A DNA stretch of 64,000 nucleotides from contig JAHLWZ010000693.1 in assembly GCA_020536535.1 (NCBI GenBank), positions 62,001 to 126,000 on the forward strand. The letters are read 5' to 3'. The notes beneath the pieces are model-generated. The model saw only the letters and a program-made list of their open reading frames with translations. It was not told where the DNA came from and made no database searches. The position numbers and the translations under genes are program-made. The DNA is from Pelomyxa schiedti. Taxonomy: Eukaryota; Protista; Evosea. Below, piece after piece: positions 3,551 to 46,898 of this stretch. How positions within the stretch are numbered: the first letter of the stretch is position 1; every line of letters starts with the position of its first letter.

Positions 3551-6500
3551 TCAGGTCTTTGTTGTCCATGTTGGGGGAGGTCCTTCGTGTGTGTCCCAAA
3601 ATTGCAATGTGCTGTGCATGTTTGCCCGGAGCATTTGAGCCAGATCGGGGTTGATAAGACAGCAGATAGACTCTAGAAGTGGCTGCAGTACAAATTTGAT
3701 GAATGTTTTTTGCCCCTTGGCAGTCCGGGGGGCATGTCTGTCCATAAAAGGTGATTTAGTGAGACCCAATCTTTCTTCCTCGTCGCCTTGAAGAAAGAAT
3801 TCCTACGTAGTTGTGTGTGATTTTTCTTAATAGAAACACTGTATGATATAGCCAATTAAGTTTTCAGAAGGGATGTGTAACCTCGGTAATGAGAAATGCC
3901 CATCGTTGCATTGTATCAAGAGGCCGAAGCGGGTTGCATATATCGGCCAGTTTTAGTATCAACTGTGACACAAGTCTCAAATCACCTAAAATTGAGTTTT
4001 TAGGAAAATTCATCATAAAAGAAACTAACCCTTTTGTGTGAAATCCCAGGACTGTGAAGTGGATTTGGCACTGAAAACGCTAAGTAGCTCCACATGCCGA
4101 GCCATACTCAAATGAATTTAGAAGGGAAAAAAGGGAATAAACTGAATTACTCTGTTGCCAAAATGAGACTTGTAACCAATTCATGAAACTCAAGGAACTG
4201 CTCCTGTGGAAAATCAACCCTCACTTTCGGGATGAAAAAGAACCTTGGTCATAAAGGAAAGCCAATTAAAATCACCATTGATTGTCATATGAATTGCTTC
4301 GTGAATATGCATGTTTTCCAAAACCTCAAGAAAGTAAGAAAATGGTTCCACGATGTGATAAGACGGAATTTACTGATATGCCATTGTAAGTCATGGCTAC
4401 TGGATCCAAAATTTTGTACAGGAAATTGTTATTTACACCTGAGATTTCAGTAAGTAACAGTATCGTAATGGAAAGTGGACAAAAGAGGGAATACCAGGGT
4501 GCTGATAGTCGTGGATTAGGGCAGAAAAGAAAAGTGCAAGAATATAAAAGTGCGGCAGTGAATCCGTCATATTAGCAACGAGTACGTTTGCAGCCTGCAA
4601 GGTATCTGCCGCGTGAATGGCATTATGAAAACTATGTTAGAGTGAGAGCAGCATAGAATACAAATAAACCACACGGATTTGCAAGATATCTAGGAAAAAT
4701 GTTGGTAAACACAGTGCACAAATTTAGTATGACTGAGAACTTACCCCTTAGTTGTTTCTAGGAGCCATTTTGAAAAGTGTTCTTCATTAATTCTATACCT
4801 TTCTAACAAACCATGTTGCTTAAAAATAGCAGTTCCGACAGCGGGAAGAATTGGGCCTCCTGGATTGTTTAGTTCCAGACTGCCTTAAAAAATTAATACA
4901 ACCTGCCCGATGAGTAAAAATAGAGAATGCCCAGTTATCGAAAATACTTTCCTCTTCACACATTCTCTGACACATACTTTTGGATGGAAGTTGGGAATGG
5001 AAAAGGGAAAAAACCCACAAGAAAAACGGTAAAACCTGTCACTTGCGCCAGAAGACATTATGCCAGAGCACTCATCACGTAAACCAGCAAGCTGTTCCAT
5101 TATGAATGCATCAACATCAGCATCGGGGGCTTCAAAGAGTTACACATATAGATCATAACCATGAACTTCTACCTCCAAAACCACGCTTTCTCTGAGTAAT
5201 GTATGTCATACGGTGCAGGTTATCAGATGCAATCAGTCGTATGATATTGTCTAAGACAAGTGAATCTTCTTTTGTCAACTCTTTTTGGAAATGATCATTT
5301 CGTGAGAAGAGAGCAGTCAGGTTGGTACTTTTTTTATTTCTGATGGCACCAAGCTCTTGAATAGCTTGTTCAGCAGGAGTACTCAAAGGCTGCATCTTAT
5401 TTAATGGTTCTGATAAAACCCTAATCTGAGAGAATCAACGTAAAAGACTTGGTGGTGAGCAAATACCCTTTGGTTAAGATATCGAACAATAGCCAAAAAG
5501 CCTGTTGATAAAATCAAAAGTACAACTATTAACGATATAGCAATTATCACTCCAATTTGTCTTGTTGAGCTATCTAGATGCAAATGAGGGAGTTGTAGAG
5601 ATTTGGTGAAGAAACCCTTTGTTATTGACACAGGGATTACCACTTTTGTGTAGTAACAAAAGGCAGATACAGTAACAGCATCATGTACTTCGAAAGTCAG
5701 CTCGGAAGAAAAAGGAAGCGGTCCCTCATATTTACATCCAATACTATAAAGAGTTGAGGAGCTAATCGTCACTTCCGTTGTATTCGTGATATTGCCTATG
5801 GAGAATGTGGGAATTAACAAGTGAGGAAGTTACAAAAAGACCTACATGCAAGTTGTGCTGAAATTTGGGCATTGTGTATGAAAATCGGAACCACACCAGT
5901 GTTACTCACTGTGAGATCAAAAACTGTACTTTTAGACTGGACAGATAGCACAATAGACTCTGGCGAAACAGTAACTCTCACAGCTAAGAAACGTTATTTC
6001 GCAAGCACGCGCGACCTATTTACCAGAAAGTACATTGACAGCTGGGCTGGCAACAGAAAGAATCCATGGTAACCCCGGCAAAGGGCTATACGTAAAAATC
6101 CATGAATTCCCAAGATACGTGTTGAAGTAAACAAATCCATTGCCTTTGGTGAAGACTGATAGAAACTGCAGTAGCTTGGTAAATTTCCACATGACAACTG
6201 TTTGAAAACCTCTGAGAAGTCACCAAGAACTGAATTGTTCAGACAAGGTGGAATAGCACTTATAAAGGTGAAATCCTTTCCAAAAAGTGTTATTCCACCA
6301 GAACCTGAGGTAGATACAACACAGCCTGATGGAGAAACAATCATGCCAAAACCTTATTATAATCAGAATAGAACCACAAATAAAACATAGTGCCGGCCTT
6401 CTGGTGTAACCACCAGCTCTGAAAAAAGATAAGTGGTTGCTTGTGTTGAAATTCCAGCAAGAAGAGCACCAATATAGACATCCCTTTTATCAAAGAGCGG

Positions 6501-7624
6501 GTGTAAAACGGAAATGATGGTCTCTATGAGAAGAAACTGGATTTGATTTTCTTGAAGATGTGTATGGAGCATACGAATTCCTGAGAAGTATGGATTGGCC
6601 CACACAGAAATTCTACTTGGGTTTTTGGTTGGACTAACCAAACCAATATTGGGAACTTGAAGATTTGGACCAGAAAGTATATTGAGCAGGGTGCCTGAGG
6701 AACGGAATGTATCCCAAGGACACATTATTCCACTATTTCCTGTCACAAAAGGGATATATTTACAACTGAGCTCACACGCGGAGTTCATCAGTCACAAGCA
6801 TCCAGAATCTAGTCAAATTTCCATCTAAAATGTCATAGTGTGGCGCAAGAAGGCTGATGAAGTCGCCGAGCCCTATTGTCTTGGCCATCCTGCAAAACTT
6901 ATCACATGGAATGCCAAGAGACTCTGAGAACAACATCAGTAATTGGGAAAACAACCTATCAACCATTGAAGTGGTCAAAGTTCCAGTTTCTCCAGTGTGG
7001 GTCACACTCACATGATGTTGAAAAATTGACTAGCTCAGGTAAAACCGCAGATGAGCGAACATACACCTAAAGTTTTCTTTTGGCATAACGACCATTTTAT
7101 AAACAAACAAATAAATAAATCCTTTAGCATGATTCCCAGTTGAAAAAGGAAGAAAAACCTCACCTCAACGGTCCTGTTTGGGTCAGGATCATAACCAGCA
7201 CCAGCACAGGCAGTAGAGGTGGAAATAGAAATTCTATCGAAACCACTGGCGAATCTGTCTATGTCACATTCATCAGCCGTAGAGTCGATCGTGTGCAGAT
7301 AGTAAGCCAACGTCTCCAGTCTCTCCACATTCAATTCAGTGTCTCCCACAACAAAGAAAAAAAAAAAGATTTTGGTGGCAGATAGAGAACCGTTCGAGCA
7401 AGAAAAATGCGAAATGCGATTGTGGGAGGAGTTCCACGCCATACCGTTTGAATAGTAACGAAATTTGGAGCTATTGATGCCACAGTGGTCTCAGTTAGTG
7501 ACAACAGCCCATCGATGGTGCACACTGCCCACAACTGGGAACTGCTGCCACCGCCTCGACAACTACTGCAGCTCAGGCACAACACAAATGCCCCCACCCA
7601 CCAAGCCACGCGAGGACATTGCAT
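3551..7624 (-). CDS. Single-pass receptor-type class I 3',5'-cyclic nucleotide phosphodiesterase
   Basis: Catalytic motifs are FHNAIHAADTLQ (~4605-4630), ALIHDYQHPG (~4495-4525), VLENMH, LKLADICNPLRP (~3925-3960) and SPFMDR..AKGQKTFIKFVLQP. A TM helix IGVIIAISLIVVLLILSTGFLAIV lies at ~5490-5560 and a signal peptide MQCPRVAWWVGAFVLCLSC at 7624. Joining the upstream exons into one gene is inferred from strand, spacing and the lack of another start. Confidence 0.78.
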
Positions 7625-7776
7625 CGTAATTAAATTCAAGTGTTTGTGGGTAACTCCGAAAAGTGTTCGCCTCTTGCGGGAAGTTTGCTCCAGCAAAGTT
7701 GGGAATGGTGCGGCCGAAAAAAAAGTTGGGAAAAAAACATCCGTTTAATGTTATAACCTCAAAAACAAAAGGGGCA

Positions 7777-10700
7777 CTACTCGGTGGGGTTGGTGAAGTT
7801 GGGGTTGTCAGTAAAGGCGCTTTTGCCTTCGTAGACAGGGTTGGAGGTGACAGAGGAGGATGAACCGTCGAGAAGTGTGTTGGGAATGTACCAGTTGGCT
7901 CCATAGCGGATGTGCTGTGGGATTCAAGTTAGTTGTGGTGTGAATCTGTTGAAAAGAAGAAATTGTTAACCTTGTAAATGAAGAACCCAGCAACAGCGCA
8001 ACCAACTGCGGCGAGGGTGAGCCCAATAACAACGCCAGTTACAGCGAGAGATGTTGTCTTTGCCTTTTTGTTGCAGTCGTCCTTCTTCTTGGTCTTGCCT
8101 CCACAATTTCCACATACATCATTGGTTTGGTTTCCATACTTCTTCCCGGCACAATCGTAGCAGGAGGAATTTCCAGCACACACGCCACAGTCGTCGTATT
8201 GCTTTGGGGGCACCTTTGGATCAGAAACCCCTTTTTGCTGTGTTAAAGCGGAGAACGCAAAGAGATTGTCTACCATCGCAGCCGGTGCAAGTAGAACCAT
8301 CTCCGTTACAAACTCCACATACATCCTCTACTTGTCCACTCCATTGGACCGCGTCACAACCAATACATTCTAGACCAGTGCCATTGCAAATTCCGCACTG
8401 ATCGTAAATCAGCCCAGACCAGGCAACGCCATCGCAACCAAGGCAGACATTGGCACCACCACAAACCCCACACCTGCAAATCAATTTAGTAAAGAAATAA
8501 TGGTTCGAGAGGAAAGCTCACAAGTCGTCCTTCTTGCCAGAGTAGGGTGCATTATCGCAGCCGAAGCAAACATTGGTAGCATTGGGATTGCAGTCACCAC
8601 ATAAATCGTATTGCAGGTTTCCAACAGGTGAACCATCACAACCAATGCACAGGTTGGCACCACCACAGACTCCGCAAAGGTCCACTTTCTGAAGACTGTG
8701 AAAAAAAATAATATTGTAGCTATTGCCCGTACTGTTCCTGAATACGGCACTTTGTCACAGCCAAGGCAGGCATCTGTTCCGCCACACACGCCACATTGAT
8801 CATAAGGTTTGTAGTCCGGTAGCCCATCGCACCCAATACAAATGTCTGAACCGCCACAGTCTCCACACTGATCCAGTTCTTTCCCAGACCACGGTATACC
8901 ATCGCAGCCCACGCAGTCATTTGTTCCACCACATTTGCCACACTGGGTTTCAGTTAGAAGAGTCTAGGAAGGAAAAGTATCAACATAGTCATAGAAAACT
9001 CCACTGAAACAAACGCCATCACAGCCATACGCGCGGTCATCGCCGCCACAGACGTGGCAGTCATCCCAAACTATAAAATGGTTAAAAAACAACAGTGTGG
9101 GAATAGCCAACCGACCTTTAGTGCTCCATGGTACATTATCGCACACGCCAAGGCATGTATTGTTTCCATCACAAACACCACACTAAGAGAATGAGTATAT
9201 TATTTACTACTGGGAACACACCTTATCATAACGTGCCCCAGAGAAAGGGACATTATCGCAACCAAGACAAGTACTGCAAGGAGGTGAGAAAGTTAAGGAA
9301 CAATCAGTTACTTACGAGCCGTTTCCACCACAGACGTTGCAAACATCCAGAGTCTTTGTATCCCACTTAGTTCCGGCACAGTCATAGCACTCATTATTGC
9401 CACCACAGACACCACACAAATCGTAGCGGGCACCGCTGTAGGGTTCTCCATCACATCCAAGACATTCGTTTGAGCCACCACAAATATGGCACAAGTCGTA
9501 CTCAACACCAGAGAAAGGTATCATATCACACCCAGCGCAGGCGGGGTGCTCTGCATCATTTGTACAATCCCCACAGCTGTAAATTTGTTATTCTTTTTTT
9601 TTTTCCCCATTGGGAGGGGAGTACACGTCGTAAAAGTATCCCGAGCGAGGTACATCATCGCAGCCCACACAGGCATCGTGACCACCACAGACATCACATC
9701 TATCGTAAACGATACCCGAAAATGCAATTCCTGCGAAAGAGTGAGTACGTAAAATCAACTCTTAGTTCGCACCGTCGCAGCCCAGGCATTCGGTACCGTT
9801 TCCACCACAGATACCACAGTCATCATAACTCAACCCAGAGAACGTTATGTTATCGCAACCAACACAAGCATTCTGAAAAAGGTTAAAAGGAGATTGGAAA
9901 AACGGGAAACTACCGAGCCATTGCAAACGTGGCAGAGATCAAACTTCAGCCCAGACCAGGCCTCATTATCGCAGCCTACACACCAATCCATTGTAGGAAA
10001 AGATGTGTTAACACAATTGCCACAACTATCATAGAACATATCCCCGAAAGGTACACCGGAGCAATCATTACACGCGCTACTTCCTCCACAAACATCTTCA
10101 TGAGAAGAGGGTAAGTGAGTTTTCGTACTGTATGGGGGTGAGAGTACCGCAGGCGTCCACTTTTTTCTCAGAGTATAAAATACCGTCACAGCCTCGGCAA
10201 GCATCAGTTCCCCCGCATTCGCCACAGTAATCGTAAGCCATGGGTGGAACAGCTAAAACACCATCACAACCAATGCACCTTAACTACAATCAGAGATCAT
10301 AAGAGAAAAGGGTTTACTTTGAAGTTCCTGCACAGACGCCACAAGGATCTTCAACAGCATGGCCCCATCTTACACCAAAGCAGTCTTCACACTCGGTGCC
10401 GTTCCCTCCACATATACCACATTGATCATACTTGTAAAATTAGAAATGATAGTAAACAATGACTGAAACCTCAGTTGGGGGTAATGAATATGCGCCATCA
10501 CAACCTTGGCATGCATTGCTACCACCGCAGACTGAACAGTTGTCCAAGGTCTTATTACCAAAGGGAACCTGCTGGCAGTCCAAGCCTAATTTCAAATGAG
10601 ACTGTTTAAGAACCATAGAAAAGTGTACATGTATTGTTTCCGCCACAGACACCACACAGATCATAGCTTTGGTAAGTGTTAGTAAAATTTGGCGAAGAGA

Positions 10701-12846
10701 AGTTATGTACGTAAGGCCTGATGGGGTGCTATCACAACCAAAACAGGTTCCGTTATCACCACCGCAGACACCACAAGCATCAACAATGGCCGTTCCATTC
10801 GGAGTATTTGTGCAGTCGAGGCAGGTCATTCCGTCACCACCACACTTCCCACACCGATCCCACACCCTACTTTGGTTAGAGGAGAACTTTTCAAAGGAGC
10901 ACAAACGCAATCCCGAAAGGCACCCCCTTGCAGTCCACACAAGCATCAGCTTCGGCAGGTAAGACACAAAAACCGCAATCATCAACAATCTTGTAAGAGT
11001 CCTTAATACCATCACATCCTACACATACTTAGAAATAATAAAGTAGAAGGGGAGACCTACCATAGCATGGGTACACTGCAAGAACTGTAATTGTTGGTTG
11101 GCCCCAGCCCAGCACTCCCAGTGTAATGAGATTATTTACAGTTGGTTGACTACATTGATTAAACCACAAAAAAAAGAAAAAAAAAACTCACGTGGCAGTA
11201 AGCAACCTCACAGTAAATTTATAAGAGGTTTGGGGGAGTACATCGGAGTATTTGGGTGGAGTGATACTTTGAACGAACAGACCAGGGTCACTTACAACTT
11301 GCATCTATTGTTCCAAGGTTACTTAAGAGAAGGACAGTTAAACAAGTACAATCAAATTCTTAGTCAGATAATCAATTCCAGTTAGAATGGCATCCACGAC
11401 ATTCGAGCTGTCGGACGCCAGCAGTACAGTTACACCAAACCTACATAAATCAGAAATAGTAGAAACTATAACAAACAAACCCCCAGTTCTTCACAATGTT
11501 AGAGAATGTAGCGTTCGGCCCAGCCCCACTTACAGCAAACACAGGGAAAACGTTCTTTTTCAAAAGGTGGGACTTGGTTCCGTCTAAAGTTGGGTAATCC
11601 TCACCTAAAGAAATCCTGGGATCAAAAATCAACCAAAATAAGGGCTTGAATCACCTGTTCCTACCCAATGGCATCGATCGACAGGGCCGGTCCCATTCCA
11701 AGTGGTACCCACGGGATAGCACGGCAGATATCGGCATTCACTGTCACAGTCGTAATCGTTTACTGGCATGTAAACATCTTTGCCCCAACAATCCCAGTTG
11801 GAAATTGTATGCCCAAGCTGCGGATCGGCATCAGTAAGAGTAACAATCATCTGGAAAGGAGCAAGTTAAGTCTTAAACCCATCAAGGGAGTGTAACCTTG
11901 AGAGCGTTGGTGCGCCACCCATTACTAGGGCACGTCGCTAGAACGACAGCACTTAAGGAAGCCTCGGGGTCATCTTGGTTACCATACGTTAGAACACCCT
12001 TTTGTCGAGGTCAATGGTGAAAGGGTTTTAAAGAAACAACCATCATGGCCTGCTGTAATTTGTTATAATTCGAGGTTAGGTTCATTTCTGTCCGGTACTC
12101 AAAATTATTGCCGTCGATGTACCCCACAGGGTAAATGGGCTTATCCACAAAAACGGAATAACCAAACATAGCATTGGGTCGAATTTTCGTTACAGAGGCG
12201 AGAAGCCTTGGAATAAGTTTCGTCAAGGTGTCGATATCATCCCTCATACTAGCCGAACTGTCCTACTTTGTGTGACAACGCACCAACGGGATTTTTTTTG
12301 GGGTGGGTACCTGGTTGATCCACAGGTCCAAAGGTTGGGTGGCAGCATTTGGGACAATAACTTCTATTGGTACATCCAGGGCTTGAGTAGCAAGAAGGAA
12401 AACTTCAGTGTTGATTGGATTGATCTTCAGTTTGAGCAAGATGTAAGGAGAGCATCAGTAAAAAACAGAAGTATACCGGAGATCCCTCTGTTCGCCAAAC
12501 AATCTGGCTGTGTTTGTGCTGCCAGATGCCATCACAAGTTCCCACGAGAGGACCAGTACCTTCACAGCGGCAAGATGTTGTAAGGTTTTTTTGCAAATAA
12601 AAGATTATAATCAAAAAAGGGGAAAAATGCAAAATGATAGACGAAAAAGAAAAAGAGAAAAAAAAGTGTAGGTGGTTTACCAGTGGCATTCGCAGCCACA
12701 CAAGAAGTCGTTGGAGCACACCATCCACAACCAGTAATAGCAACGCAAGTGCTACAAATTGTACCCGGAGTGCAATCAGCCGCACCGGATGCAGAGATCC
12801 AAGCAATAGCGACCAGCGCAAACGCAAGAATAACCGTCGACCTCAT
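7777..12846 (-). CDS. Integrin-beta-like adhesion receptor (signal peptide, PSI, beta-I/vWA, >20 Cys-rich CGVCGG repeats, TM, NPxY/NPxF tail)
   Basis: PSI-like CSTCVAITGCGWCAPTTSC. Beta-I motifs PLDLWINQDSSASMRDD (DxSxS), FGYSVFVDKP, GNQDDPEASLSAV..C...GWR, DYPTL...L.KKNVFPVFAV and LASDSSNVVDAI. Repeats GCDGxPxSGxxxDxCGVCGG, TM LAVTGVVIGLTLAAVGCAVAGFFIY, and tail TSNPVYEGKSAFTDNPNFTNPTE*. Confidence 0.87.
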
Positions 12847-43961: not shown

Positions 43962-46898
43962 TTACCACAGTTTGATTCCTAGCATTGTGAACAGGGGAGA
44001 GCAACAAAAGCAGCTCCAAAGCGATGTGGCGTTGGAATCTGGGCATGCACCTGGGCGTGCAGCCGTGGGGATTCCATGAACCTGTGACTCCTCTTCGGCT
44101 TCGGCGTCCCACTCGTCGTCTGCATCGGCATTGTATTCGGAATTATGGTCGCTGGCATCACCGGCACCACCGGCTTTGCTAGATACTGAGCCGGTGTCAC
44201 TCTCAATATCCGGTGATGGTGGGCTGGCTAAGAGCGGATGGGAATTCTCGGGAGAGAAATAACAGGGCGACAGGAACATCAGTACGGTGTAAACAGCGGA
44301 CTTGGGCAATGACCCGAAGGTACGGGGTGTCGTAGCAGTCGCGGAATTCTTTGCCCAGCACAAGAGGATGGTCTTTATAATGCACCGGAACCAATGCGGG
44401 AAGTATTTATGCCTGGCGGGGAGCCATGTTGCCGGTAAATAGTACCTCTGCCAGTAAGATGCTGCGGAAAAATGGTTTGGTGGGCAATTGTCATCTGTAC
44501 CGCCATCATCCGATCGGGATTGTCCTTCATCGTCGTCACTTTCCGTGTCATCATCAAGGATGTCCCCTTCGCTTGATTCACTTGCTGAGAAAGTCTCCCC
44601 TGAGGTCAATACAAGACCATGGAACCAAAGAAGTTCAGCAGTTGTATGTTTCCGATGTCGAACAGCTATTGTAAGTAGGTCGCTGGAGACATGAGCACCG
44701 TGCTTCAGAAAAAGGGATAACGTCGAATCCATTCCATTTTCCACCAACTTACGCAAAATGTTCTTCTTGGACAAGTTGGGGTCAGCACCACGGTCCAATA
44801 GAAGTTGTATACACTTGTCATCATAAGTGAATAAGCTTGTAACAGCGAGAGGGTATTCTCCGAATATAAGTGCGTTTGGGTTCATGTTAACGGCAGATGA
44901 CAAAAGAAATTGGACCAGTTCGACGTTGTGTAGAGCCAAAGCTTCATAAAAGAGTCCATCTTTAAGCTTTGGTTGTTGCTGTTGAATGATGCCTATGTAC
45001 CAGTCACGATTGACAGTTATAGGGGATTGCACAAAGCATGCCCTGATTACACTCACTTTTGTACTTGTTGCCCCTTCAAGAAAGACTCGTTGTAGGATTT
45101 CCATGAGGTTAGACCGTTTTTCATGTGATGCAATGTTCATTACCAGTCCCACAAAGTCAATAGGATCAATTACTTTTGCCATTGTTGTAACAAACCGGGC
45201 TTCATATTTTGTTCCACCACAACTCTCACTTTGTTCCATCAAACGAAATTCGGAAATTGGCACTTCACCCTCCTTTATTTTAGTTTTTGTGCATTCATCA
45301 ATAAAGGGGTGATATAACTCAAGCCGGGCCTCACCTGGAGGTTTTTGTTCAAGTAGTGCGGCAGTAATATGGCTAGTTACATTAAACAACCCTTCTGAGT
45401 GCAAAAACAGCTTGGGGAATGTTTGTAGCAAAATGACTAACAAATACAAGCAGGGTCGTGAGTTCTCACCTGCCAGAAGTAGAGTTGAACCCCTCTCAAA
45501 CAGAGACACAATAGATTCCTCTTCCATTTGTCTTAATATTTCCTTCGTTGATATAAGAGATAAGGCAGCATGCTTCACTACAGCATCCTTGTCAAATACT
45601 AGTGTCAGAGCATTTCTTGCAAGTTGTGGTTTCAATTGCCCCCCAACTAGGCTAACTGGAATTAATACAAGGATCGAGAGAACTTTGTCTTTTGGTGATG
45701 AAATAGGTGCATGACGTTCGTGACAATCAATTAATTGGGTATGTGCCTGTGAGTCGCCGATACACATCCAAGTGAGTGCGGTCAGAACCGATACAATGAA
45801 GTTGGTATCACCCAAATTGGCACTTGAAGCAATTACTCCATCTCTATCAAGGCAAAAGGATGCCACTTTTTCTAGGGAGGAGACCAGTGCAGCAACAAAG
45901 TGATGTGTAAGAGAGCGTACTTCATTAGACCCATCCCTGAAGTGAATATCCCAATATTTCAAAGCACCAAGACCGCGGTTCTCTTTCTCAGAGAGCGTCG
46001 CCAGGTACTCGGTAATAGCTTTGGTTGCCTCCTCCAGTAACAGAGGCATAATTTTTCCGTGTTTTACAACCATGGTAAATAATCCAGGGCACCCACAAGA
46101 GATAGCTTCACAAACGCCATCAACAATGACCCTTTCATGTTCCGCTAGAATCTCGGCGCCAAGGCTGGATTTCATCAGCTCGCAGCACAAACGCGTTCCC
46201 CCCTTTACGGACTCTTGGTCCTCGCTATTCCCACACATCAACTCCACAGCGATGCTGCACAGAACGCCGACCAGGTCGCGCGGAACCCCCAAATTCCGTT
46301 GGAACGCGTACAGAATCGCCGTGGCGAATCCCAACTTGGTCGAAGCGTCGCGACTCTTCGCACCCGAACCGACGCCTACGCCGACGCCGCCAACCGCGAC
46401 GAACTCGCCGCAGGCTCCCATAAGCCGCTCCCAACACCCGCCAGCGGCAGCGGCGGCCACCGCGGCGCACGACGCGCCGAGGGCGAGCTGCCCCAGGGCC
46501 CGCCGCTCCGCCACCCACGCGCATTTCCCCAGGGCCGCCAGGGCCCCGCACCCCTGGTCCACGACGGCGAGCACGGCCCCCACGTCTTCGTCGTTCCCGC
46601 AGCCCACCGGCGACGCCCCCGCGGCCGCAAGCGCCGGTGATTCCGGTGCTGCTGAGGCCGAGGCGGCGGGCTGGGGCTGCGGCTGCGGCTGGGGGGCCAA
46701 GCCTGCCGCGAGCTTCCGGAGGACGCGGACGTGGGGGGCGATGCAGCGGTAGCCGCGGGACGGGGACCCGCCGGGGGGCTCAGGGGAACACAGGGCAGAG
46801 GAGAGCGACTCCAGGGCCGAGGCCACTCGCTGGGGCAGCTCCTGCGTAATGGAAACGAAGAGGGGCAGGCCGCGTGCAGTGGCAGGTAGCCTGCTCAT
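43962..46898 (-). CDS. Intronless 978-aa protein with helical N-terminus, ankyrin repeats and Cys-rich C-terminus
   Basis: Uninterrupted ORF with ankyrin-like ALALHNVELVQFLLS..MNPN, CIQLLLDRGADPNLS, LFLKHGAHV and AVRHRKHTTAELL, plus WLPARHKYFPHWFRCIIKTILLCW. Confidence 0.8.
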   Translation of the reverse strand: MSRLPATARGLPLFVSITQELPQRVASALESLSSALCSPEPPGGSPSRGYRCIAPHVRVLRKLAAGLAPQPQPQPQPAASASAAPESPALAAAGASPVGCGNDEDVGAVLAVVDQGCGALAALGKCAWVAERRALGQLALGASCAAVAAAAAGGCWERLMGACGEFVAVGGVGVGVGSGAKSRDASTKLGFATAILYAFQRNLGVPRDLVGVLCSIAVELMCGNSEDQESVKGGTRLCCELMKSSLGAEILAEHERVIVDGVCEAISCGCPGLFTMVVKHGKIMPLLLEEATKAITEYLATLSEKENRGLGALKYWDIHFRDGSNEVRSLTHHFVAALVSSLEKVASFCLDRDGVIASSANLGDTNFIVSVLTALTWMCIGDSQAHTQLIDCHERHAPISSPKDKVLSILVLIPVSLVGGQLKPQLARNALTLVFDKDAVVKHAALSLISTKEILRQMEEESIVSLFERGSTLLLAGENSRPCLYLLVILLQTFPKLFLHSEGLFNVTSHITAALLEQKPPGEARLELYHPFIDECTKTKIKEGEVPISEFRLMEQSESCGGTKYEARFVTTMAKVIDPIDFVGLVMNIASHEKRSNLMEILQRVFLEGATSTKVSVIRACFVQSPITVNRDWYIGIIQQQQPKLKDGLFYEALALHNVELVQFLLSSAVNMNPNALIFGEYPLAVTSLFTYDDKCIQLLLDRGADPNLSKKNILRKLVENGMDSTLSLFLKHGAHVSSDLLTIAVRHRKHTTAELLWFHGLVLTSGETFSASESSEGDILDDDTESDDDEGQSRSDDGGTDDNCPPNHFSAASYWQRYYLPATWLPARHKYFPHWFRCIIKTILLCWAKNSATATTPRTFGSLPKSAVYTVLMFLSPCYFSPENSHPLLASPPSPDIESDTGSVSSKAGGAGDASDHNSEYNADADDEWDAEAEEESQVHGIPTAARPGACPDSNATSLWSCFCCSPLFTMLGIKLW

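Follow-up and report, generated by a model that had tools for sequence, protein, structure and literature searches.

We analysed a 64,000-nucleotide stretch of DNA from the archamoeba Pelomyxa schiedti (assembly GCA_020536535.1, contig JAHLWZ010000693.1, positions 62,001 to 126,000 of the forward strand), hereafter called the window. On its minus strand, from 12846 to 7777, lies an intron-dense eukaryotic gene, whose product is very probably a stand-alone integrin beta of the amoebozoan Type I, 1264 residues long. The gene is flanked by a receptor-type cyclic-nucleotide phosphodiesterase gene on the same strand and by a divergently oriented gene on the other.

Gene structure

A three-frame translation of the minus strand between 7600 and 12950 placed the beta-I motifs quoted in the initial annotation on short open stretches separated by T-rich gaps, and all of these motifs fall in frame once 27 introns are removed. 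In our manual model, 28 exons are joined across 27 GT-AG introns; a model based on the longest open reading frame was rejected, as it read through introns. The introns are 39-121 nt long (median 43), and their density fits the 7.4 introns per gene reported for the P. schiedti genome (PMC8887013). Translation runs from an ATG at 12846 to a TAG at 7779-7777, so that the bounds of the gene extend exactly from start to stop codon, and the product is a type I membrane protein. A self-trained exon finder recovered 27 of the 28 exons, and performed poorly on the head of the neighbouring gene.

The best match in a protein search with exon 4 was the public product of this locus (P0001), which is identical to our model over residues 1-1263, indicating that the same 27 junctions were used in both, that between the transmembrane and tail exons included. 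The annotation pipeline for this genome drew on transcript data (PMC8887013). The whole-protein family searches and the head model described below were run on P0001. We additionally identified a paralogue, P0019 (KAH3744682.1), on contig JAHLWZ010000906.1 of the same assembly (L001:10001-15382), which has 1368 residues, its own stop codon and an Integrin_beta score of 76 bits. Its name in NCBI is "exocyst complex subunit 4", though the protein is an integrin beta.

Head domains

The protein begins with a signal peptide followed by the cysteine pattern CTPGTICSTCVAITGCGWC, and contains only two hydrophobic segments, the signal peptide (residues 1-25) and a transmembrane helix (residues 1192-1218). 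For the PSI domain proposed in the initial annotation the cysteine pattern fits, but the Pfam score does not reach the threshold (PSI 21 bits, cut-off 23.1; PSI_integrin 12.6 bits). C432, just ahead of the stalk, could be the eighth, long-range PSI cysteine known from animal beta chains, if the corresponding disulfide forms.

The beta-I domain contains DSSAS at residues 122-126, VFVDKP at 158-163, DDPEAS at 204-209, EDYPTLDGTKSHLLKKNVFPVFAV at 296-319 and LASDSSNV at 343-350. We assign the MIDAS (metal ion-dependent adhesion site) to D122/S124/S126/E207/D236, the site adjacent to it (ADMIDAS) to D129/D130, and the synergistic metal-binding site (SyMBS) to D161/N202/D204/P206/E207. An alignment by phmmer of exon 4 with residues 119-168 of beta3 has no gaps, and pairs D122, S124, S126, D129, D130 and D161 with D119, S121, S123, D126, D127 and D158, which we take to be the MIDAS, ADMIDAS and SyMBS positions in beta3 numbering. 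N202, D204, P206, E207 and D236 were read directly, within GNQDDPEAS and TLTDA, and fall in conserved columns of a 49-row alignment. Across these 49 beta-I domains each metal-site column shows either no variation or at least 90% conservation and, as judged from the aligned residues, every MIDAS, ADMIDAS and SyMBS position is conserved in this copy.

We noted a cysteine-rich insertion of about 45 residues with 6 cysteines (residues ~250-295; 11603-11829, minus strand) between TLTDA and EDYP, where animal chains have the loop just ahead of their DYPS motif. It is kept in the paralogue, and is poorly modelled by AlphaFold2.

Searches with profiles, against PDB sequences and by structure assigned this region to integrin beta, supporting the architecture first proposed. 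The Pfam Integrin_beta profile (PF00362; cut-off 24.8 bits) gave exon 4 by itself 35 bits and the complete P0001 81.8 bits, with no other vWA family of Pfam matched by exon 4. Integrin beta chains made up 45 of the 47 matches of exon 4 among PDB sequences; exons 5, 7 and 28, searched singly against the same sequences, had no match. An AlphaFold2 model of residues 1-434 of P0001, computed with the 49-sequence alignment, had a predicted local distance difference test (pLDDT) score of 81.9 and a predicted template-modelling (pTM) score of 0.80, with low confidence only in the PSI region and the cysteine-rich insertion. In a Foldseek search of the PDB with this model, each of the top 50 matches was an integrin beta chain (E 6e-29 to 1e-25, TM-score ~0.65, 380-470 columns). 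The alignments cover both the hybrid and the beta-I domains, indicating that the beta-I domain sits inside the hybrid domain as in animals, and the head, as modelled, folds like the animal beta headpiece.

Stalk of four-cysteine modules

Between the head and the membrane we counted 29 four-cysteine modules, in line with the more than 20 repeats noted initially. The modules are 24-30 residues long, apart from the last one of 17, and follow the consensus DxCGVCGGxNxCxGCDGxPxSGxxY. Residues 431-1186 hold 29 DxCxxC motifs, 58 CxxC pairs, 116 cysteines in total and 15 N-glycosylation sequons. A relaxed four-cysteine pattern occurs 26 times, against a mean of 0.25 and a maximum of 3 in 2000 shuffles of the stalk. 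Pairwise identity between modules averages 43%, with a faint two-module periodicity. We found no tandem repeat in the stalk at DNA level, and its 17 introns lie at differing module positions and phases, suggesting that the array is old rather than recently amplified.

The Pfam families EGF_integrin, I-EGF_1 and Integrin_B_tail had no match on the stalk exons or P0001, and did match an animal control (P0069), confirming the description of the stalk as non-EGF. Stalk exons weakly matched, at 17-18.5 bits, the C-terminal CGVCGGDxSxC of the ADAMTS cysteine-rich domain (ADAMTS_CR_3, positions 81-115), although these matches are under the 21-bit cut-off, concern one short motif and do not demonstrate homology. 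An AlphaFold2 model of one three-module exon, made from a 10-row alignment drawn from the window, reached a pLDDT of 43, and look-alikes of the stalk in the ESM Atlas were unnamed fragments only.

A different mechanism of extension or activation, as suggested initially for this stalk, is plausible. With neither an I-EGF knee nor a beta-tail domain, the protein is unlikely to open like the switchblade of animal integrins, and regulation at the level of the head, through the conserved ADMIDAS and the hybrid domain, is likewise plausible.

Transmembrane helix and tail

The tail begins KHIRYGANWY and is interrupted by intron 27 (7970-7915). It contains NPVY (residue 1244; 7842-7831) and NPNF (residue 1256; 7806-7795), which are the only two NPx[YF] motifs of the whole protein. 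The 8 residues between them equal the spacing in human beta1, NPIYKSAVTTVVNPKY (a string confirmed in the literature), and thus bear out the double NPxY/F tail with animal-like spacing that had been described. When the tail was shuffled 300,000 times, a pair of this kind appeared 56 times, and among 300,000 random 46-mers drawn with the composition of the protein it appeared 5 times. The Pfam family Integrin_b_cyt had no match on the stalk exons or P0001, and did match the animal control.

The splice between the transmembrane and tail exons had been singled out beforehand as a point on which the assignment could fail. Our junction agrees with that of the independent public model, and P0019 shares KHIRYGANWYIPN[TS]LLDGSSS..TSNP[VI]Y across it, despite a head identity of 47%; the membrane-proximal tail and the first NPxY are nearly invariant between the two paralogues. 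When trained without the tail exon, codon log-odds were +2.6 in the frame used and negative in the other two (-5.9 and -24.9). The only acceptor that scores better than that of intron 27, at 7946, would give an intron of 25 nt (at least 39 nt elsewhere), lead into the frame scoring -24.9 and lose the conserved tail, and was rejected. Coordinates of all features are collected in Table 1.

Table 1. Features of the integrin beta locus and of the flanking genes, in window coordinates.
Feature	Position	Strand	Basis or remark
Integrin beta gene	7777..12846	-	28 exons, manual model; product as P0001 over residues 1-1263
Signal peptide MRSTVILAFALVAIAWISASGA	12781..12846	-	First ATG of open reading frame and hydrophobic segment; cleavage predicted
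PSI-like domain, interrupted by intron 1, 7 Cys, residues 24-65	12531..12777	-	Pfam PSI 21 bits, E 4e-4
Hybrid domain, N-terminal half, residues 66-112	12338..12530	-	AlphaFold2 beta strands, pLDDT 87-95; Foldseek
Beta-I (vWA) domain, residues 113-365	11353..12337	-	Pfam PF00362; exon 4 aligned to beta3 by phmmer
Hybrid domain, C-terminal half, residues 366-430	11071..11352	-	AlphaFold2 strands, pLDDT 93-97; Foldseek
Stalk, residues 431-1186, 29 four-Cys modules	8070..11070	-	Motif counts, module alignment
Transmembrane helix TSLAVTGVVIGLTLAAVGCAVAGFFIY, contains GVVIG (GxxxG motif)	7974..8054	-	Hydropathy scan
Cytoplasmic tail KHIRYGANWYIPNTLLDGSSSSVTSNPVYEGKSAFTDNPNFTNPTE, 46 residues	7780..7973	-	Model, codon log-odds, paralogue conservation
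218-nt "intron" of public model	7563..7780	-	Removes stop, joins integrin to next gene
Downstream gene: ATG 7624, signal peptide MQCPRVAWWVGAFVLCLSCSSC, ~470-residue ectodomain, transmembrane helix, class I cyclic-nucleotide phosphodiesterase	3551..7624	-	PDEase_I 215.6 bits
Divergent intergenic region, 443 bp between start codons	12847..13289	.	Presumed shared promoter
Neighbour gene, public product of 2037 residues	13290..21367	+	Divergent from integrin beta

Comparison with known families

Type I amoebozoan integrin betas, including that of the archamoeba Mastigamoeba balamuthi, were described by Kang et al. 2020 (bioRxiv 10.1101/2020.04.29.069435) as proteins of 595-3296 residues with a PSI domain, a vWA domain with three cation sites, a transmembrane helix, NPXY/F tails and a stalk motif, DXCGXCGGX(3-6)CXGC, in 3-7 copies. 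The Pelomyxa protein agrees with this definition in every point, as regards the PSI domain by its cysteine pattern, and the caution that the class might not be new was well placed: the stalk motif and NPxY tails are published for Amoebozoa, and the gene is an additional member of a known family. The stalk contains 8 strict matches to the published motif, compared with 29 modules in the same cysteine frame, so that the difference between 3-7 copies and 29 is mostly one of how modules are counted. For the Mastigamoeba scaffolds 5-8 introns are reported, in contrast to 27 in the Pelomyxa gene. Pelomyxa is not mentioned in the text of Kang et al. 2020, and the literature that pairs Pelomyxa with integrin holds single passing mentions of integrin. 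A metagenome scan with exon 4 found no relative.

The animal integrin betas compared (beta1, beta2, beta3, beta6 and beta7; e.g. PDB 5e6s_B, 4um9_B and 3fcs_B) have the headpiece fold in common with the Pelomyxa protein (TM-score ~0.65), together with the metal-coordinating residues, a head of ~430 residues, a single transmembrane helix, and a tail of ~46 residues that carries a pair of NPx[YF] motifs, likewise separated by 8 residues. In place of I-EGF1-4 and the beta-tail domain, however, Pelomyxa has the ~750-residue four-cysteine stalk. It also differs by the lack of the HDRRE motif and of the specificity-loop disulfide, and by the cysteine-rich beta-I insertion, with identity at 17-22%. 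The equivalent LLxxxHDRKE motif is missing in all amoebozoan integrin betas (Kang et al., bioRxiv 10.1101/2020.04.29.069435).

The SibA-E proteins of Dictyostelium, type I membrane proteins that also act in adhesion, combine a vWA domain with a glycine-rich transmembrane helix and two NPxY motifs, and talin A is known from the literature to bind the proximal NPxY of SibA. In contrast to the Pelomyxa protein, which has a stalk, a hybrid domain and intact cation motifs, Sib proteins have no cysteine-rich stalk.

Bacterial-type proteins were also recovered by exon 4. P0002, P0003 and about 60 further matches are non-membrane proteins with RTX repeats, Big and cadherin-like domains, and an Integrin_beta-type vWA that scores 230-275 bits. 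In exon 4 these proteins are 37-41% identical to the Pelomyxa gene, as close as its own paralogue.

That paralogue, P0019, shares the architecture of the window gene, a divergent LamG/LRR/EGF neighbour and an almost identical juxtamembrane tail. It differs in having ~33 modules, a MIDAS that reads DITGS, a degenerate SyMBS, and STLY in place of the second tail motif.

Alternative readings of the locus

Several observations weigh against an integrin beta at this locus. Most matches of the exon 4 search were bacterial-type proteins carrying PF00362, and the Pelomyxa pair, in a star-like tree of 49 beta-I domains whose animal branch was very long, formed a long branch apart from the one animal sequence. 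With this sampling, sequence phylogeny is therefore no proof by itself of integrin ancestry; the case for membership of the integrin betas is made by the architecture as a whole together with the fold of the headpiece, and not by the tree. The PSI region combines its Pfam score below the cut-off with a pLDDT of 41-57 over residues 1-70; the tail has no membrane-proximal KLLxxxHDR(K/R)E motif; and the W...NPxY spacing of animal talin ligands is not kept, the tryptophan being 18 residues upstream instead of 5. No FG-GAP loop (DxDxDGxxD) occurs in any frame of the window, and there is no alpha chain there. Intron 27 has the lowest-scoring acceptor of all 27 introns (-1.2), and no transcript-derived fragment spanning the transmembrane/tail junction turned up in a word search. 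The product might alternatively be a vWA adhesin like Sib or the bacterial PF00362 proteins, acting alone or with non-integrin partners, rather than functionally an integrin subunit: the best non-self matches of exon 4 are bacterial-type proteins with RTX, Big and cadherin-like domains, the window has no alpha chain, few amoebozoans possess both integrin chains (PMC12686525), and the vWA_SIBA-E profile scores 53.5 bits on P0001. The same protein scores higher with Integrin_beta (81.8 bits) and falls outside the definition of the Sib family, whose members lack the three cation motifs (Kang et al. 2020). A beta-I domain inserted in a hybrid domain is otherwise found only in animal beta chains, and it co-occurs here with the PSI-like cysteine motif, three metal sites, a transmembrane helix and the double NPx[YF] tail, which makes a non-integrin adhesin highly improbable. 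The weak acceptor of the last intron might also point to a silent or decaying copy among paralogues. We consider this extremely improbable, given 1264 codons over 28 exons with no stop or frameshift, metal-site residues that are all intact here, compared with DITGS and a degenerate SyMBS in P0019, and a strongly conserved tail.

The public product is itself at variance with a stand-alone integrin beta. P0001 is 2194 residues long: beyond ...NPNFTNPT a 218-nt "intron" takes it past the stop codon, and it continues to a second transmembrane helix and a PDEase_I domain. If this fusion were true, adhesion would be wired directly to cAMP/cGMP hydrolysis. The fused structure is the one carried in NCBI, from an annotation that used transcript data (PMC8887013), the two genes share a strand and are separated by only 152 nt, and Kang et al. 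2020 report some amoebozoan integrins fused to kinase or cNMP-binding domains. The "intron", however, measures almost twice the maximum, and five times the median, of the other 27 introns. It shows no pyrimidine tract, and both its splice sites score at or under the weakest real ones (donor -0.3; acceptor 0.0, against 0.55-7.7 for other acceptors). It contains ATTAAA 27 nt past the integrin stop, and an in-frame ATG at 7624 with a textbook signal peptide that runs directly into the phosphodiesterase frame. Fusion would moreover place a ~470-residue region rich in cysteines and sequons in the cytosol and the catalytic domain outside the cell. P0019 ends at the position equivalent to the integrin stop in the window, and is followed by an unrelated C2/PLAT gene. 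We consequently read 7563..7780 as intergenic DNA and the start of the downstream gene; the 2194-residue product most likely arose when the gene predictor joined two neighbouring genes, and a genuine integrin beta-phosphodiesterase with a second membrane-spanning region is unlikely. On the side of the fusion, a class I phosphodiesterase whose catalytic domain is extracellular is known from Dictyostelium. A word search for stand-alone relatives of the phosphodiesterase part, with words from its first 500 residues only, was blank.

Predicted function and implications

As a stand-alone integrin beta, the protein would bind an extracellular ligand with its head, through a metal ion at the MIDAS, with an affinity probably tuned, as in animals, by the ADMIDAS and a swing-out of the hybrid domain. 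The stalk, glycosylated and rich in disulfides, may serve as a long spacer that holds the head far above the membrane, probably without a knee between bent and extended forms. By comparison with animal tails and Dictyostelium SibA, NPVY is predicted to recruit a FERM/PTB domain of the talin type and so couple the receptor to actin, and the second motif, NPNF here and STLY in P0019, appears to be lineage-variable. Every metal-binding residue is kept in the window copy and not in P0019, making the former the better candidate for tests of ligand and talin binding.

With this locus the record gains an integrin beta from a second archamoeba, anchored in a genome and with all its introns mapped, supporting the published view that integrin-type adhesion predates animals. 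One of the two Pelomyxa genes is fused to a phosphodiesterase in the public annotation and the other is named as an exocyst subunit, so that surveys by name or length would miss them.

The head-to-head neighbour as a possible partner

The divergent neighbour encodes a type I membrane protein with a signal peptide, CBM-like and LamG_3 domains, leucine-rich repeats (LRRs), an IPT-like region, about 28 EGFs of the tenascin/teneurin type, a transmembrane helix WWIIVVCACGGSLILVGGAFGAFMAI and a tail of ~29 residues. At the paralogous locus the divergent partner (L001:738-9533; 2075 residues) lies 467 bp off, and has 31 EGF-type motifs. Beta modules and neighbour EGFs thus number 29 and ~28 in the window, and ~33 and ~31 at the P0019 locus, the two loci being duplicates and not independent samples. 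If two chains stood side by side, their module numbers would be expected to track each other. On the basis of the shared divergent region, the joint duplication and these tracking numbers, the integrin beta may pair with the LamG/LRR/IPT/EGF product rather than with a classical alpha chain, a suggestion that we regard as rather doubtful. The Mastigamoeba integrin beta gene adjoins a tenascin open reading frame (Kang et al., bioRxiv 10.1101/2020.04.29.069435), which, were the partnership real, would make the pair older than Pelomyxa; a conserved gene pair of this kind could reveal what amoebal beta chains pair with.

Elsewhere in the window, we noted an intron-less open reading frame of 978 codons (43965-46898, minus strand) in an island of 59% G+C, against ~45% for the window, whose sole match was a weak one to ankyrin.

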